Source: Podarcis melisellensis
Lineage: Eukaryota
Assembly (NCBI GenBank): GCA_964234715.1
Contig: OZ174278.1
DNA length: 64,000 nucleotides
Reading direction: 5' to 3' (one strand)
A program made the position numbers and the translations under genes. The first letter of the stretch is position 1. Each line of letters opens with the position of its first letter. The notes under the pieces are model-generated. The model was not told the origin of the DNA and did no database searches. It saw nothing but the letters and a program-made list of their open reading frames with translations. Below are positions 25,662-62,980 of this stretch, in pieces.

Positions 25662-27043
25662 CCGTATTTTTCGCACCATAGGACGCACCGGACCATAGGG
25701 CGCACCCAGTTTTTTGGGGGGGAAATAAAGGGGAAAAAATTATTTCCCCCCCCCCAGGCGCGGGGCTGGGGCGGGGGAAGCTCGAGCTTCCCCCGACCCC
25801 AGCCCCCAAACAGGCAGCTCTCCGCAAGCAGCGGGAGCGCTCCCGCTGCTTGCGGAGAGGTCCGCGAAGCCTGGACGCGCTGAGCTCAGCGCGCCCAGGC
25901 TTCGGCATGCAGGCACCTCTCCGCAAGCAGCGGGAGCGTTCCCGCTGCTTGCGGAGAGGTCCGCGAAGCCTGGACGCGCTGAGCTCAGCGCGCCCAGGCT
26001 TCGGCATGCAGGCACCTCTCCGCAAGCAGCAGCGGGAGCGTTCCCGCTGCTTGCGGAGAGGTCCGCGAAGCCTGGATGCGCTGAGCTCAGCACGCCCAGG
26101 CTTCGGCACGCAGGCACCTCTCCGCAAGCAGCGGGAGCGTTCCCGCTGCTTGCGGAGAGGTGCGCGAAGCCTGGACGCGCTGAGCTCAGCGCGCCCAGGC
26201 TTCGGCACGCAGGCACCTCTCCGCAAGCAGCAGCGGGAGCGTTCCCGCTGCTTGCGGAGAGGTCCGCGAAGCCTGGACGCGCTGAGCTCAGCGCGCCCAG
26301 GCTTCGGCACGCAGGCACCTCTCCGCAAGCAGCGGGAGCGTTCCCGCTGCTTGCGGAGAGGTCCGCGAAGCCTGGACGCGCTGAGCTCAGCGCGCCCAGG
26401 CTTCGGCACGCAGGCACCTCTCCGCAAGCAGCGGGAGCGTTCCCGCTGCTTGCGGAGAGGTCCGCGAAGCCTGGACGCGCTGAGCTCAGCGCGCCCAGGC
26501 TTCGGCACGCAGGCACCTCTCCGCAAGCAGCGGGAGCGTTCCCGCTGCTTGCGGAGAGGTCCGCGAAGCCTGGACGCGCTGAGCTCAGCGCGCCCAGGCT
26601 TCGGCACGCAGGCACCTCTCCGCAAGCAGCGGGAGCGTTCCCGCTGCTTGCGGAGAGGTCCGCGAAGCCTGGACGCGCTGAGCTCAGCGCGCCCAGGCTT
26701 CGGCATGCAGGCACCTCTCCGCAAGCAGCAGCGGGAGCGTTCCCGCTGCTTGCGGAGAGGTCCGCTGCTTGCGGAGAGGTCCGCGAAGCCTGGACGCGCT
26801 GAGCTCAGCGCGCCCAGGCTTCGGCATGCAGGCAACTCTCCGCAAGCAGTGGGAGCCCAGCGCTGGGCTCCCGCTGCTTGCGGAGAGGTGTGCGAAGCCT
26901 GGAGAGCTGAGGGGTCGGTGCGCACCGACCCCTCTCACTCTCCAGGCTTCAGCGAAAGCCTGCATTCGCACCATAGGACGCACACACATTTCCCCTTCAT
27001 TTTTGGAGGGGAAAAAGTGCGTCCTATGGTGCGAAAAATACGG
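25662..27043. mobile_element. Non-autonomous Tc2-like (Tc1/mariner superfamily) DNA transposon carrying a hairpin tandem array
   Basis: TA|CCGTATTTTTCGCACCATAGGACGCAC ... GTGCGTCCTATGGTGCGAAAAATACGG|TA perfect TIRs with TA TSD. Confidence 0.88.
25818..26890. repeat. ~99-bp tandem repeat, 10 units plus a partial one, each built from two palindromes
   Basis: Unit ctctccgcaagcagcgggagcgttcccgctgcttgcggagag-gtccgc-gaagcctggacgcgctgagctcagcgcgcccaggcttc-ggcacgcaggcac; units start at 25818, 25917, 26016 and so on. Confidence 0.97.

Positions 27044-55680: not shown

Positions 55681-55720
<40 letters not shown>
55681..55720. repeat. (GATA)n microsatellite
   Basis: Direct reading, 10 units. Confidence 0.97.
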
Positions 55721-55721
<1 letters not shown>

Positions 55722-56933
55722 ACAAGCAGTACTAGCAGAGTTGCAGCATAAAGTTTTTGAGGCAAAATGTCTTGCAAGGTTTCCCCCCAAAAACATCACT
55801 GGAAGCAAAAGTTAGTTTTCAGGAGCAACCATTGATATGTTGTGTGATCTAGAGAAAGCGTGTTTGTGTGTTGCTTAAGTGCTTCTCTGCATGCACAGGG
55901 AGGCATGCCGTTTTTTGCTCACAGTTGCAGTGCCATGTGTCGTATGAAACACGTCTCTGGAAGGGCTTCTGTTAGCAGCACATGGCAGCCCACATTCACA
56001 AAGAGCTGCAGGAGGAGGAAGGGAAGTCCTTAGAGCAGCCTTACCTAAACTGGTTTTGGACTACAATGCCCATTAGTCCCAGTTAGCAGGTCAGTAGTTG
56101 AGGATTAGCATTTGGAGGGCACCAGATTAGGGAAGGCTGCCCTAGTGAATGCGCATAAACCTTTGGATCTCGGCCACCGTTGTATCACTGGCTGAAGACA
56201 GAGGCAGCTCACAGCACTGGGAAGACACTTCCAACTCTCTTCTAGAAAGATATATCCACAGCTGTTTCTGTTGTAACCAGCAGATGGAATGCTGATAAAT
56301 CTTTTTGTGCCTCTCCCTGCTTGTTTTGTTTCCCAGCCATAGGAGGAGGCAAACTGCCCTGCAGCCCAGCTGCCTAAGATAGGCAAAGGGTTGTGCTGTG
56401 AGCTCCCTTTCCATATCACATCTGTCTTCAGTCATGTTTCGTCAGCTGCGGATGCACTTGTAAGAATGATGCAACAAAATAATTGTGTGTGTGTCCAAAT
56501 AATTGTGTACTCCATTGAGACTCTTTTCTATATAACTTCGTCATGTGAACTCATTCTGAGTGGCTTGCTGCAGAGTGGCAAACTAAACAGAATTGCTTAT
56601 TTTTCAGTGTTTGTTGGACACAGAGCATTACTCATCCAGACTCTTATCTAGCATCATCTATGCTGTTGCTAATAAAGGCTTCCTTTCACCAATATCTATG
56701 ATTATGGTAGCACTCTCCTTGGACATCAGTGCTGGGAAGCTAAGACACTACTTGGAAACGAACAGCCACACAATTTATGTGATTGTGTGCAGGAGAAAAG
56801 TCCAGGCCACGTCACGTGGATGAGGCTTGGATTGTGGGATCAGGATTGCCTGCAAAAGTGTGGTCCCGATAAAGCTCATTATGAAGCTGTTGGGCATCTG
56901 CGTTGTAACCCAAATATACATGTCTATGACTAA

Positions 56934-57274
56934 GGGACGCGGGTGGCGCTGTGGGTTAAACCACAGAGCCTAGGACTTGCCGATCAGAAGGTTGCCGGTT
57001 CGAATCCCCGCGATGGGGGGAGCTCCCGTTGCTCGGTCCCTGCTCCTGCCAACCTAGCAGTTCGAAAGCACGTCAAAGTGCAAGTAGATAAATAGGTACC
57101 GCTCCGGTGAGAAGGTGCACTGCTCTGGTTCGCCAGAAGTGGCTTAGTCATGCTGGCCACATGACCTGGAAGCTGTACGCCAGCTCCCTCGGCCAATAAA
57201 GCGAGATGAGCACCGCAACCCCCAGAGTCGGCCACGACTGGACCTAATGGTCAGGGGTCCCTTTACCTTACCTT
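56934..57274 (+). mobile_element. Sauria SINE
   Basis: Full length, same family. Confidence 0.92.
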
Positions 57275-57539
57275 TGTCACTAGTCTAACATTTTTAATGC
57301 ACATTTTTTAAATTAAAAAAATGCAGTATATGGAAAAGTGATTCAAGAATTGATCAGACCTCAATTTCTGCTTTTGCTGTGGTTGTTTGAATATGTGCAC
57401 TGGGTGGGGGTGGGGAATTAACTAAGTGTAATGCTGTTACATTAATCTTTTGTATGTTTCGGTGTAATAGGCCATTTGTGATCTCTGAGCCTCTTAACAA
57501 CTTTGGTGTTAGGGGAATGGAGTTTGTATTATCTGGTAG

Positions 57540-57713
<174 letters not shown>

Positions 57714-58770
57714 TAACCCCACCACCACCACAGTAGTCCCTATAAAAATGCTTTACACCTATGCTTTTGAAGTTGTAAAGAAAACAATATATTGTATGCA
57801 GCTTTGTTGTAAATACCTGCCCTCACAGCTCTGCATTTCTGACCCACTCTCCTGACCTGCCTTGCAAAATCTTTTGAAGGAGTATTGCTAGGAACGCCAA
57901 AGTCCCAGTGGCATAGACCCATTTTATGAACTTGCAAATTTAGGCTGATTTTTCCAAAAATCAACAACAAATTCTGGTTTGGGCTGCCTGAACTGTCATG
58001 GATTGTTTTCAGCCTAGTTAACTGTTAGGATGTGATTCCCTTCTGTCTTCCTGTGACTGAAAGATGTTACCAGCTGAACTGAATCAGGGCTTTGTCAGTT
58101 TATACTATCAGATAACTTTTTGATAGATATAATGATAATCTGGCTAGCTCAAGTGGAGTCAGGACTCAGGATAAACCGAGTATGCCATGAGAAGTGCTGC
58201 TGTTGCTATTACATTATTCAGCCACAGTTCTATAAAAAGCCAACCTCAAGCTTTGAGGTAAATCTTTAATGAGAACTGGTTCCCATGGCCTTTTACTGTT
58301 TTGAAGCTCCTGGCGTTACACAGCCTAGTTGAAAAGTTATTTTAAAGGTGATGAAATATTATTATATTTGAAACTCTGATTTCTGCATACATCATCTGCT
58401 GCCCATGTGGCTTGGCTGTTACTATGGTTTGTTGGACCTCAATTCATTTCGAGGTCACTGGCTACTTGACTCCTTTCATAGTAAGTAGCCTTGTATTGGG
58501 TTAGGAAACAAAATTAGGGCAATGGCAAAAATTAGGAGGCATCTACACAAAAAACATATAAAGCTCAATGAAGGTATCACAGGAAACTCTCTTTGGACAC
58601 ATCAGTTTTCACTGATTTGAAGAGAAGCAAATATTGCTGATAAAAACATACTTGTGGGTTTGTGTCCAGCTTAATCCTATAGTCAGTCATAGTCACTGCT
58701 CTGTATCGGCCAAGAAACATTTCCCGCTGTTCTTCCACACCTCTCTGTATATTTTTTCATTTTATATATA

Positions 58771-60889
58771 CAGTGGTGCCCCGCTAGACGAATGCCTCGC
58801 AAGACGAAAAACCCGCAAGACGAAAGGGTTTTTCGGTTTTTGCGACGCTTCGCTAGACGATTTTCCCTATGGGCTTGCATCGCAAGACGAAAGCCCATAG
58901 GGAAATCTCGGGGACCTTTTTTTAAATGCTGGCGGTGGGGAGCAAAGCCTTCCCCCCCCTCCGGACTTCAGAAGAGGTCCAGGAAGGCCGGCGGGGGCGA
59001 AAGGCTTTGCTCCCCACCGCCAGCATTTTAAAAGCGGTCCGGGATAGCAGGGAAGCGCTTCCCGCTATCCCGGACGGCTTTTGAAGGCAGGCAGGGGGGG
59101 CAAAGACTTTTGCCCCCCGCCCGCCTTGGGAAGAGGTCCTGGACCTCTTCCCAAGGCGGGCGGGGGGCAAAAGTCTTTGCCCCCCCTGCCTGCCTAACCG
59201 GGGGCTTTTAAATCCCGGGAGAGCGGGAAGGCAGCGCTGTCTTTTCCGCTCTCCCGGAAAGGCAGGCAGGGGGGAGCAAAGACTTTTGCCCCCCGCCCGC
59301 CTTCGGAAGAGGGCCAGGACCTCTTCCCAAGGCGGGCGGGGGGCAAAAGTCTTTGCCCCCCCTGCCTGCCTAACCGGGGGCTTTTAAATCGCCCCGGGAC
59401 TGTCCGGGGCGATTTAAAAGCCCCCGGACGGCTTTTGAAGCCTCCCCCCCCGCCCGGCTTCGGGGCATCATCCCGATGCCGGGCGGTGGGGCAGGAACGC
59501 CTCCCCCAGCCGCCCGGCTTCGGGGCATCGTCCCGATGCCGGGCGGTGGGGCAGGAACGCCTCCCCCAGCCGCCCGGCTTCGGGGCATCGTCCCGATGCC
59601 GGGCGGTGGGGCAGGAACGCCTCCCCCAGCCGCCCGGCTTCGGGGCATCGTCCCGATGCCGGGCGGTGGGGCAGGAAAGCCTCCCCCAGCCGCCCGGCAT
59701 CGGAACGATGTCCCGAAGCCGGGCGGCCGGGCGGGAAAGCCTCCCCCCCCCCCGCCCGGCTTCGGGGCATCGTCCCGATGCCGGGCGGTGGGGCAGGAAC
59801 GCCTCCCCCAGCCGCCCGGCTTCGGGGCATCGTCCCGATGCCGGGCGGTGGGGCAGGAACGCCTCCCCCAGCCGCCCGGCTTCGGGGCGTCGTCCCGATG
59901 CCGGGCGGTGGGGCAGGAACGCCTCCCCCAGCCGCCCGGTTTCGGGGCGTCGTCCCGATGCCGGGCGGTGGGGCAGGAACGCCTCCCCCAGCCGCCCGGC
60001 TTCGGGGCATCTTCCCGATGCCGGGCGGTGGGGCAGGAACGCCTCCCCCAGCCGCCCGGCTTCGGGGCATCGTCCCGATGCCGGGCGGTGGGGCAGGAAA
60101 GCCTCCCCCAGCCGCCCGGCATCGGAACGATGTCCCGAAGCCGGGCGGCCGGGCGGGAAAGCCTCCCCCCCCCGCCCGGCTTCGGGGCATCGTCCCGATG
60201 CCGGGCGGTGGGGCAGGAACGCCTCCCCCAGCCGCCCGGCATCGGGGCATCGTCCCGATGCCGGGCGGTGGGGCAGGAACGCCTCCCCCAGCCGCCCGGC
60301 TTCGGGGCATCGTCCCGATGCCGGGCGGTGGGGCAGGAAAGCCTCCCCCAGCCGCCCGGCATCGGAACGATGTCCCGAAGCCGGGCGGCCGGGCGGGAAA
60401 GCCTCCCCCCCCCGCCCGGCTTCGGGGCATCGTCCCGATGCCGGGCGGTGGGGCAGGAAAGCCTCCCCCAGCCGCCCGGCATCGGGGCATCGTCCCGATG
60501 CCGGGCGGTGGGGCAGGAACGCCTCCCCCAGCCGCCCGGCATCGGGGCATCGTCCCGATGCCGGGCGGTGGGGCAGGAAAGCCTCCCCCAGCCGCCCGGC
60601 ATCGGAACGATGTCCCGAAGCCGGGCGGCCGGGCGGGAAAGCCTTTGTCCCCCCTGCCTGCCTTCCCAGGGGCTTTTAAATCGCCCCGGACAGCGGAGAA
60701 GTCCTCCGCTGTCCCGGGCGATTTTAAAATGCCGCCCGCCAGAAGAGGTCGGGGGAAGGCTTTTTCCATAGGAACGCATTAATTGATTTTCAATGCATTC
60801 CTATGGAAAACCGTGCATCGCAAGACGAAAAACTCGCAAGACGAAGAGACTTGCGGAACGAATTAATTTCGTCTTGCGAGGCACCACTG
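58771..60889. mobile_element. Non-autonomous Tigger/pogo-like DNA transposon with a palindrome-rich interior and a 60-bp array, in the intron between coding exons 8 and 9
   Basis: TA|CAGTGGTGCCCCGCTAGACGAAT ... ATTTCGTCTTGCGAGGCACCACTG|TA TIRs, TA TSD, repeated subterminal CGCAAGACGA motifs. Confidence 0.88.
59451..60644. repeat. 60-bp GC-rich minisatellite, 20 units, with higher-order structure
   Basis: Unit cgcccggcttcggggcatcgtcccgatgccgggcggtggggcaggaacgcctcccccagc aligns row by row in the 60-nt display. Confidence 0.97.
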
Positions 60890-62980
60890 TATCTCCCTAA
60901 GTTGATTGGTAATAATTTTTAGCTTGTTCACTGTTGTTATCTGAGCCTTATTTGGACGTTCAGGTTCCTCACATGATTTGAAATGTGTGAGGGAGAGGAG
61001 GGAATACACTGTCTGTCCCCGCCCCTGAATCATATCCCCTGGCTCTCCATGTGTCCCCCATTTGATAAACTAAATTGATCCTAAATTGCATGTGGAACTT
61101 CAATAAGAACAGCAGGCACCCTGCTGCAGATGTTCTCCTTCCAACCCAAGGAGGATGGTGGGTCAGGATGGACACAGGTGTCACTGGGAACATTGAGCAT
61201 TACTCTGCTCTTCTTCTTATTGTGTATGGAAGAGAAGTCCTGAATAGGGCACTTTCCCATGAGTTTTGGACAAGTATCTTTGAAATATTTCTTTTTAAGA
61301 GTTAGGAAGGGCTGTGTATCTGTGAACATGGCAGAGAAGCAAACCTCCTGGCAATGGGTTGGGAAAAGAGAAGAGTGGCACAGTCTGGGAATAAGGTTTT
61401 TGGAGTGGCCCATGGCTCTTCAAGCCCCAAACCTGCTTATGTTTCAGCAGCAGTTTTTAAAGTAGATGACTGCATCATGGTGCTGGCTTGTTTCTCCATC
61501 CATCCTCCTCTTCTTTCTAGTCAAATGTTATGCCTGTGTATGAAATCCAGCAGTATTTGGGCATATCTAGTGTGCAGGGTGGAAAGGTACAGACACATTT
61601 CCTAATTATGCATAGCAGAACATTTAGGGGTGAGTGGGAAGTCGGGCTTAGTCCGGTGGGCTTTGTAGAAAAAGGAAGCTTTGGATACTAGTAATGATCA
61701 GTGGTCCTAATTCTTCAGTCGTGAAGGGTTATGCATTGACAATATACTGACATTTGCACATTTTGATTCCCAGTAACACAGATGTATTGAAAGCATTTCT
61801 CAAATCTTACTCTGCATGTGACATTTCAAAAAGGCTTAAATGAGTTCATTGGCATCACAAGCCAAAGAGGAATGAGAAGAAACAGGATTTGCAGAGGAGG
61901 GAAATGACTCAGGGAGGGTTGCTGAGTTTGATGGACCCGCATGAGTGAGAAGTGATCTCTTCCAGTGCTTGACACAGAGCCAGTCACTCTCGTTTTCACC
62001 CCTCCAAAGAATGTGTCACTTACAATAGCAAACTCGGAATTGATTTAGTTTCCATAGGCAGAGTGCCATCAGATGGCTAGGTTTTAGGCAGGCCTGTGTG
62101 GAGCTTGTCTGAGGCCCAGGGTGCGGGTCTTCTTAGAATAAAGTTATAAACTGAAACCAAAAAGCAGTCAGTTCCGGGCAGGGTTTAGCTCCCTTCCCCC
62201 AGCCCTTTGGCCAGCTTATTCCTCCAAGTCCTGGGGCAAGTGTATCTGGCTGCCTGCCCCCTTGCACAGGCCTGGTTTCAGGGTCCCTCCAATTCTCTTT
62301 CCTTTCCCCTTTAAAAAGGTGAAACCTCTCCTCCTGCCATTTTCAGAATAGCAAAATATGCTCACATGGCTGCTATAGGTACCTCTGCATGGCAAGTTAG
62401 GTTGTTGGCCTGGCCTGTGTTCCAGGTCGCATTTGATGGCATGCAAGTAATGTCTAGTTCTACCCATTGCTGTGCTCTGTAATGATGCTGAGCTGTGGCT
62501 ATGGTGCACATGAAAATATTGTGCTGTTGCAATGCTTCAATTTTAGCACATGTGCCACAGAAGTGAGGCCAATCCAGCTGGAAAACCAAACGGAATGCTT
62601 TCTGATGATATAATAATCACACAAGCATCAACACTGCATGTTTCCTGTTCCTAGGATCAAACTTAAAGGCATTTGTAGAATTAGGGTTTTGCGCTTCTTC
62701 CCAAATGTGGGGAAACCTGTGTGGTTAGCCTCCATGAAGTCACACAAGAGATGGCACAACGCACCAAATGCGTTAGAATGAACCTGTAATTTTGTCTTGT
62801 TTAAGGCAAGTATAAGCATTGGCTGTGGTCTTTCGTGCAGATAGTATATTGTTCTGTATGACTGTCAGGTGTAACAGTGCCACAACATCTTTTTTAAAAA
62901 AACAAACAAAGGAAACCAGCCCAAACTTGACTAATGTCTCAAAATGGCCCTGATGTGCTTGAGGAAGGGGCAAGTAATAG

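Follow-up and report, generated by a model that had tools for sequence, protein, structure and literature searches.

Flipped hairpins and a module-level higher-order repeat in the cargo of a lizard MITE

Studies on tandem-repeat MITEs, including DTC84 of the clam Donax trunculus and the pearl/CvA elements of oysters, describe an ordered central array in which the terminal variants are fixed and the number of middle units varies (PMC3879986). The palindrome within each DTC84-type repeat has been proposed as a hotspot of this length change (PMC3879986). In addition, the mutations documented for template switching include spacers that became inverted between two short inverted repeats (PMC8604942; PMC8794818). 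Here we describe a MITE of the lizard Podarcis melisellensis in which an array of 60-bp hairpin units lies between flanking modules, and in which the unit number varies among four modules of one and the same copy. Some of the hairpins are flipped at regular places, giving the order A4B-A6B-A3B-A3B. This order is a module-level higher-order repeat in four tandem copies, not periodic flipping. The MITE lies in a window of 64 kb, by which we mean the whole stretch of DNA analysed, consisting of CpG-depleted vertebrate sequence without N runs. The coordinates of its features are collected in Table 1.

Table 1. Positions of the MITE, its palindromic cassettes and the parts of its hairpin array, numbered along the window
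Feature	Coordinates	Strand	Remarks
Non-autonomous DNA transposon (MITE)	58771..60889	.	2119 bp; TA at 58769-58770 and 60890-60891
Left terminal inverted repeat (TIR), CAGTGGTGCCCCGCTAGACGAA	58771..58792	+	0 matches expected by chance
Right TIR	60868..60889	-	2 mismatches against left TIR
Subterminal 11-mer, CGCAAGACGAA	58782..58891	+	4 copies at left end; 3 more at 60819-60878
Cassette P1, palindromic	58912..59040	.	inverted repeat I6; left arm homologous to the array's stem-spacer-stem segment
Cassette P2, palindromic	59085..59195	.	inverted repeat I3; 55-nt arms 100% complementary
Cassette P3, palindromic	59270..59371	.	direct duplicate of P2; 176 bp spacing, 97% identity
60-bp hairpin array	59440..60644	.	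20 units, four tandem modules
Module M1	59440..59738	.	A' A A A B, units 1-5
Module M2	59739..60160	.	A' A a a a A B, units 6-12; private changes in units 8-10
Module M3	60161..60400	.	A' H A B, units 13-16
Module M4	60401..60640	.	A' H H B, units 17-20; 2/240 sites differ from M3 (60460, 60541)
B (inverted) core, unit 5	59699..59717	.	
B (inverted) core, unit 12	60121..60139	.	
B (inverted) core, unit 16	60361..60379	.	
B (inverted) core, unit 20	60601..60619	.	right flank runs into homolog of P2/P3 right arm
Hybrid core, unit 14	60241..60259		same core as unit 18
Hybrid core, unit 18	60481..60499	.	A at position 1, rest A-type; B-type AAAGCC spacer before
Hybrid core, unit 19	60541..60559		same core as unit 18

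The element, its insertion site and its surroundings

The element is a young, non-autonomous, TA-targeting cut-and-paste transposon. Its TIRs, its TA TSD with a precise empty site and the lack of transposase coding make it a Tc1/mariner-type MITE. The 22-nt TIRs occur nowhere else within the window. Copies of the subterminal 11-mer were found seven times against 0.27 expected and are possibly transposase binding sites. The ORFs of the element contain no transposase domain, with no Pfam family reaching its cutoff, and an autonomous partner with matching TIRs is absent from the window. Pfam returned only a sub-threshold SPRY match on the ORFs of the array. These ORFs (up to 469 aa, on both strands and in several frames) were considered as genes and rejected, being merely stop-free readings of the GC-rich 60-bp repeat. 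Such spurious ORFs of 334-469 aa fill 59370-60782 in several frames of both strands, and they are a likely cause of false gene calls in automatic annotation.

The evidence for the empty site consists of contigs of public runs (Logan) compared with the window. In contigs of runs X2 and X15, position 58768 is joined directly to 60890, so that 2121 nt are skipped and a single TA is left; a contig of run X3 skips 2124 nt at the same site. In run X1, one contig of 5370 nt bridges the empty site and leads from the left flank straight to the right flank. The empty site is therefore found in three runs other than X15, namely X1, from the same species, and X2 and X3, from two other species. In X15, which is also from the same species, a left-flank contig ends exactly at 58770, and a second contig starts 28 nt before the insertion site and continues into the right flank. 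This contig break, taken together with the empty-site contig of the same run, suggests a heterozygous insertion that was split in the de Bruijn graph. The insertion is apparently still polymorphic, and the precise empty site in other runs marks it as young. On the ends of the MITE, short contigs accumulate in their thousands from each of the four runs; in several species, therefore, the family is high-copy. Patterns for the array unit and for the TIR had no match in metagenome, viral and prokaryote contigs, collections that contain no lizard sequence and thus have no bearing on the family.

The MITE stretch is GC-rich and has kept its CpGs, with a GC content of 0.57 and a CpG observed/expected ratio of 0.7-0.8, against 0.2-0.3 in the surroundings. 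An apparent coding exon lies on the + strand at 57565-57712, preceded by AG and followed by GT. Given this apparent exon, we place the MITE in the intron that follows. The insertion thereby brings strong hairpins totalling more than 1.8 kb into an intron, with palindromes of at least 100 nt among them, and it is therefore a candidate site of fragility, of array-length polymorphism and of long double-stranded structure in the pre-mRNA. Just upstream of the exon lies a tRNA-derived SINE of the squamate type (56920-57275), and a perfect (GATA)10 microsatellite occupies 55681-55720. The same window also holds a second, unrelated MITE with different ends (25662-27043). It is GC- and CpG-rich as well, and it contains a tandem array whose unit of ~99 bp consists of two near-perfect palindromes.

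A search of 58700-60950 with Rfam at permissive thresholds gave 188 hits, all far below the gathering scores and mostly to unrelated miRNA-precursor models on both strands. We discarded them as generic hairpin matches, which illustrate how such hairpin cargo may be mistaken for miRNA precursors.

Units, modules and the higher-order pattern

TRF reports one array in the element, with a period of 60, 20.1 copies and 91% matches. Anchoring the units on the stems CGCCCGGC...GCCGGGCG gives 20 units, spaced by 60 bp except for 62 bp between units 5 and 6. Anchored in this way, the units fall exactly at the coordinates that a sequence-only reading of this DNA had reported. They lie at least 680 bp from the left end of the MITE and ~245 bp from the right end. 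Its A core is the 19-nt TTCGGGGCATCGTCCCGAT, and units 5, 12, 16 and 20 (stem anchors at 59691, 60113, 60353 and 60593) carry the B core ATCGGAACGATGTCCCGAA instead. The core arms are perfect 9-bp inverted repeats, CCGCCCGGC and GCCGGGCGG. Compared with the A core, B differs at 7 of 19 positions; compared with the reverse complement of A, it differs at two, as the same reading had stated (G6A and C13T), and matches at 17 of 19. The A core is a quasi-palindrome in its own right, which leaves seven core positions that are informative about orientation, and B has the inverted state at six of them.

All differences between the two cores are substitutions, which is what an origin of B from A by ordinary point mutations would leave behind. 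However, seven random substitutions reach a distance of two or less from the reverse complement with a probability of 2.4e-6 by analytic calculation and 6.5e-6 by simulation. This explanation, which the sequence-only reading had named as one that would refute its view, is rejected: with P ~2e-6 for seven random substitutions restoring the reverse complement at six of seven informative sites, we regard point mutation as next to impossible.

Over the whole unit, A and B differ at 11 of 60 positions, and B differs from individual A or H units at 9-12. In the frame spacer-stem-core-stem, the B units 5, 12, 16 and 20 are identical to each other over 60 bp, with no difference. They share a right flank with 3-4 changes, and the unit that follows shares a poly-C flank. 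The spacer GGAAAGCC precedes B in four of four cases, as had been observed before, but it is not specific to B because it is found after each B and before unit 18 as well. The left flank of B is the A left flank CCTCCCCCAGCC and not the reverse complement of the A right flank CCTGCCCCACC, which eliminates fold-back duplication of a whole unit as the source of B. A-type units and B units stand in a ratio of 16:4, and B occurs only as the final unit of a module, with its own flanks.

As assembled, the array has the order (A' A A A B) (A' A a a a A B) (A' H A B) (A' H H B). The A' units (1, 6, 13 and 17) have a poly-C left flank in place of CCCCCAGCC; units 6, 13 and 17 each come after a B, and units 13 and 17 are identical. 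The modules comprise 4-7 units, and their final 99 nt are the same in all four. M3 and M4 have 238 of 240 positions in common (99.2% identity). Both of their differences are states already found elsewhere in the array, and therefore they fit an exchange of units better than new point mutations. About 9% of the possible substitutions recreate an existing state, so that two such hits would have a probability of ~0.01 on a rough estimate. The internal junctions between a B and the next A' (...GGGAAA/GCCTCCCCCCCC...) all have the sequence of the right end of the array, ...GGGAAAGCC, joined to its left start, TCCCCCCCC..., and AAGCC is present at both outer borders. Judged on the sequence, these junctions are the signature of a tandem duplication of whole modules at the AAGCC microhomology.

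The sequence-only reading had recognized the A4B-A6B-A3B-A3B pattern, which is indeed present in the assembly, and had taken it as a direct record of template switching or hairpin-primed replication; on this view, cores would flip repeatedly and the four B units would stand for four events. The orientation relation itself speaks for such flipping, and the units fold into strong hairpins. However, independent flips would not share the two non-inversion changes, the 3-4 changes of the right flank, the AAAGCC spacers and the poly-C flank of the next unit. In addition, a pure inversion of A is seen in none of the 20 units, and the array is internal, with no replicon terminus. Recurrent flipping is therefore very improbable. 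Its hairpin-primed, parvovirus-type form, which would call for a terminal hairpin and a mixture of both orientations, is not supported by an array that is internal and chromosomal, with the two forms at 16:4 and in fixed positions. Template switching fares better in part: the B core is the inverted A core between 9-bp arms, and a single such event is possible, but the array records at most one inversion. With no difference among the four B units over 60 bp and with the same special flanks around each, the inverted core arose once; a single origin followed by module duplication is very probably correct, whichever of the two routes to that origin discussed below was taken. As a caution for other arrays, a periodic variant does not mean repeated mutation unless the flanks differ; here, one event was copied four times.

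The check on the array order was limited to Logan contigs of ~80-90 nt, which span at most one or two units, and the order rests on the assembly. Contigs of this length cannot cross more than 1-2 units, and this leaves room for an artefact in which mis-assembly of the 1.2-kb repeat would have produced the unit order, the unit number or the B units. Against this, contigs of run X15 match a B-to-A' junction and the last B with its right flank (records 11 and 12), and a contig of run X1 covers the same junction (record 4). The bins over the B units have depth in the two other species as well, and the B flanks are consistent and structured. We consider a mis-assembly highly unlikely. The private variants of units 9-10 have contig depth in run X15 only, which weakly supports this allele. 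Contig depth, with B bins much deeper than A bins in species B and a mixed picture in species C, was also considered as a guide to the ancestral orientation; it was dropped because contig depths are not rankable and multi-mapping contigs are placed only once.

Units 14, 18 and 19 had been described as hybrids with a perfected stem, and quasi-palindrome correction had been named as a signature of template switching or hairpin-primed replication. Their core ATCGGGGCATCGTCCCGAT is the A core with a single T1-to-A change, which does close a T.T mismatch, and the predicted DNA fold improves from -26.5 kcal/mol in an A unit to -29.5 kcal/mol in a hybrid. An exchange between B and A units explains the hybrids as well as such a correction does, and both routes are possible. 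Unit 18 has both left-hand markers of B (the AAAGCC spacer and the A at core position 1) together with an A-type remainder. It is a candidate product of a B x A exchange, since an exchange within the shared TCGG would yield exactly this make-up.

Origin of the inverted core

The part of the MITE to the left of the array (58771-59450) folds at -339 kcal/mol with z = -28, and nearly the entire interior of the element folds. This part contains the palindromic cassettes P1-P3. The centre of the P2 palindrome is only 1 nt long. Perfect palindromes of this length are usually unstable. Each arm of P2 contains one sub-hairpin (59094-59118 and 59162-59186), and the cores of the two are exact reverse complements. 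The same design is seen in both P2 and P3, where runs of G and C enclose a small hairpin in each arm and the left core CAAAGACTTTTG matches the right core exactly when reverse-complemented. Flipped hairpin pairs thus pre-exist in the MITE, simply because both arms of a larger palindrome contain a hairpin.

The array is related to these cassettes. Its A-to-B spacer aligns with the left arm of P1 at 23 of 26 positions and scores 35, where shuffled sequences reach no more than 23. Of the two spacer variants, AAAGCC is closer to the P1 arm than AACGCC (score 35 against 30, with the same shuffle maximum), which suggests that AACGCC is derived and spread with the amplified A units. We also scripted a construct that runs from the left border of the array to the middle of the unit-1 core and continues from the middle of the unit-20 core to the right border. 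This construct aligns to P2 and P3 with 86% identity over ~130 columns; the A' side corresponds to a P-type left arm and the B side to a P-type right arm.

According to the model that we favour over an inversion in place, A would be the hairpin in the left arm, and B the hairpin in the right arm, of a single ancestral cassette with dyad symmetry, which was later duplicated as a module; we hold this to be about evenly balanced between right and wrong. The array is the cargo of a MITE whose interior is made of a few GC-rich hairpin modules that were duplicated repeatedly. Its 60-bp unit alternates between a core hairpin (K, the 9-bp stems with the 19-nt core) and a spacer hairpin (S), both of them homologous to parts of P1-P3. 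An AnB block is a complete module: it opens with a P-type left arm (poly-C-GCCCGGC + TTCGG...), continues with K+S units in variable number and closes with a P-type right arm (...CCCGAA + GCCGGGCGG...GGG-AAAGCC). The A-type cores would lie to the left of the dyad axis of the module and the single B core to its right, so that A and B would differ in orientation because the ancestral cassette has dyad symmetry. The sub-hairpins in the arms of P2 and P3, as exact flips of one another, follow the same design as A and B. Because each stem is palindromic, neighbouring hairpins serve simultaneously as direct and as inverted repeats. The left-hand K+S unit could then be amplified by slippage, by unequal exchange or by break-repair synthesis, and the spacer would change from AAAGCC to AACGCC in the amplified copies. 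Finally, the whole module would be duplicated in tandem between AAGCC microhomologies until four copies were present. The order of these events, the ancestral orientation and the process behind them (slippage, unequal exchange or repair synthesis after excision) are what we infer from the present arrangement.

This cassette model accounts for the fixed position of B beside a P-type right arm and for its P-type right flank. P2 and P3 share the identical design, and they are themselves a 176-bp tandem duplication. On the other hand, the identity of the B and A left flanks limits the inversion on that side to the core and its 9-bp arms, and the model needs a later homogenisation of the flank. It also takes the ancestral state from paralogous cassettes inside one element, and it takes the unit order from the assembly.

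In the main alternative, the last unit of a pre-existing A array would have had its core inverted in place. A single template switch or a recombination between the 9-bp arms would have inverted its 19-nt core, two substitutions would have followed, and the module would then have been duplicated. This explanation predicts perfect arms around the core and a left flank of B that is unchanged, exactly as found, and loop inversions of rRNA hairpins are documented. However, a core of 19 nt is long compared with the spacers of 2-5 bp inverted in yeast and with the rRNA loops, which are typically of 4 and at most of 7-8 nt. Moreover, B always adjoins a P-type right arm, the A19 state matches the P-type arm, the right flank of B is P-type and not A-type, and two extra substitutions are required. 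We regard an inversion in place as possible but rather unlikely, and prefer the cassette model.

A stronger idea is that inversion and duplication are linked and ongoing. The A/B and B/A' pairs fold at -65.5 and -63.7 kcal/mol, about 8-10 kcal/mol better than the A/A pair at -55.3 kcal/mol. Each A/B or B/A' pair forms a near-perfect hairpin of ~100 nt, and such pairs dominate the centroid of the whole-array fold. An inverted core might thus create a near-perfect palindrome of ~100 nt, at which stalling of replication or cutting would occur, and the repair would duplicate modules. We think that this is unlikely. If it were true, the hairpin cargo of active lizard MITEs would propagate itself while generating higher-order repeats and making introns structurally polymorphic, and A and B would interconvert at a measurable rate across the family.

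Under either origin, the locus is a small and clean case of a higher-order repeat born inside transposon cargo. It is a palindrome of palindromes, in which one set of short homologies serves as both direct and inverted repeats, and amplification and inversion share the same substrate.

Comparison with known systems

Like DTC84 and pearl/CvA, the lizard MITE is non-coding, has short TIRs and a TSD, and carries a central tandem array; in those elements, the copy number varies and the variants are ordered (PMC3879986). In contrast to those elements, its TSD is TA instead of AA, and it has no microsatellite tail. In addition, the lizard unit is a hairpin throughout, one of its variants is core-inverted, and its array repeats a larger palindromic module.

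The B core resembles the product of a template-switch inversion, as a segment between perfect short arms that has turned into its reverse complement and is visible as a cluster of substitutions. It differs from the documented cases in its length, with 19 nt here against 2-8 nt, and in its two extra changes. The terminal hairpins of parvoviruses and poxviruses also exist as two reverse-complement isomers, flip and flop, between the same stems (vaccinia: PMC8956199). However, those hairpins are at the ends of linear replicons, they arise in each round of replication, and both forms occur. We tested the lizard array for a terminal position and for interchangeable orientation and found neither, and the similarity is a resemblance only.

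As in satellite higher-order repeats formed by unequal exchange, the blocks of the array are more alike than the units inside a block, as the 99.2% identity of M3 and M4 illustrates. Unlike in satellites, the blocks number only four and vary in length, they lie within a mobile element, and their boundaries coincide with the arms of a palindromic cassette. A parallel in the window itself is the second MITE. Its TIRs and units are different, and its hairpins are near-perfect palindromes, so that a flip would be invisible in them. Nevertheless, both elements are built in the same way, as a shell of TIRs around a tandemly amplified, GC-rich hairpin cargo.
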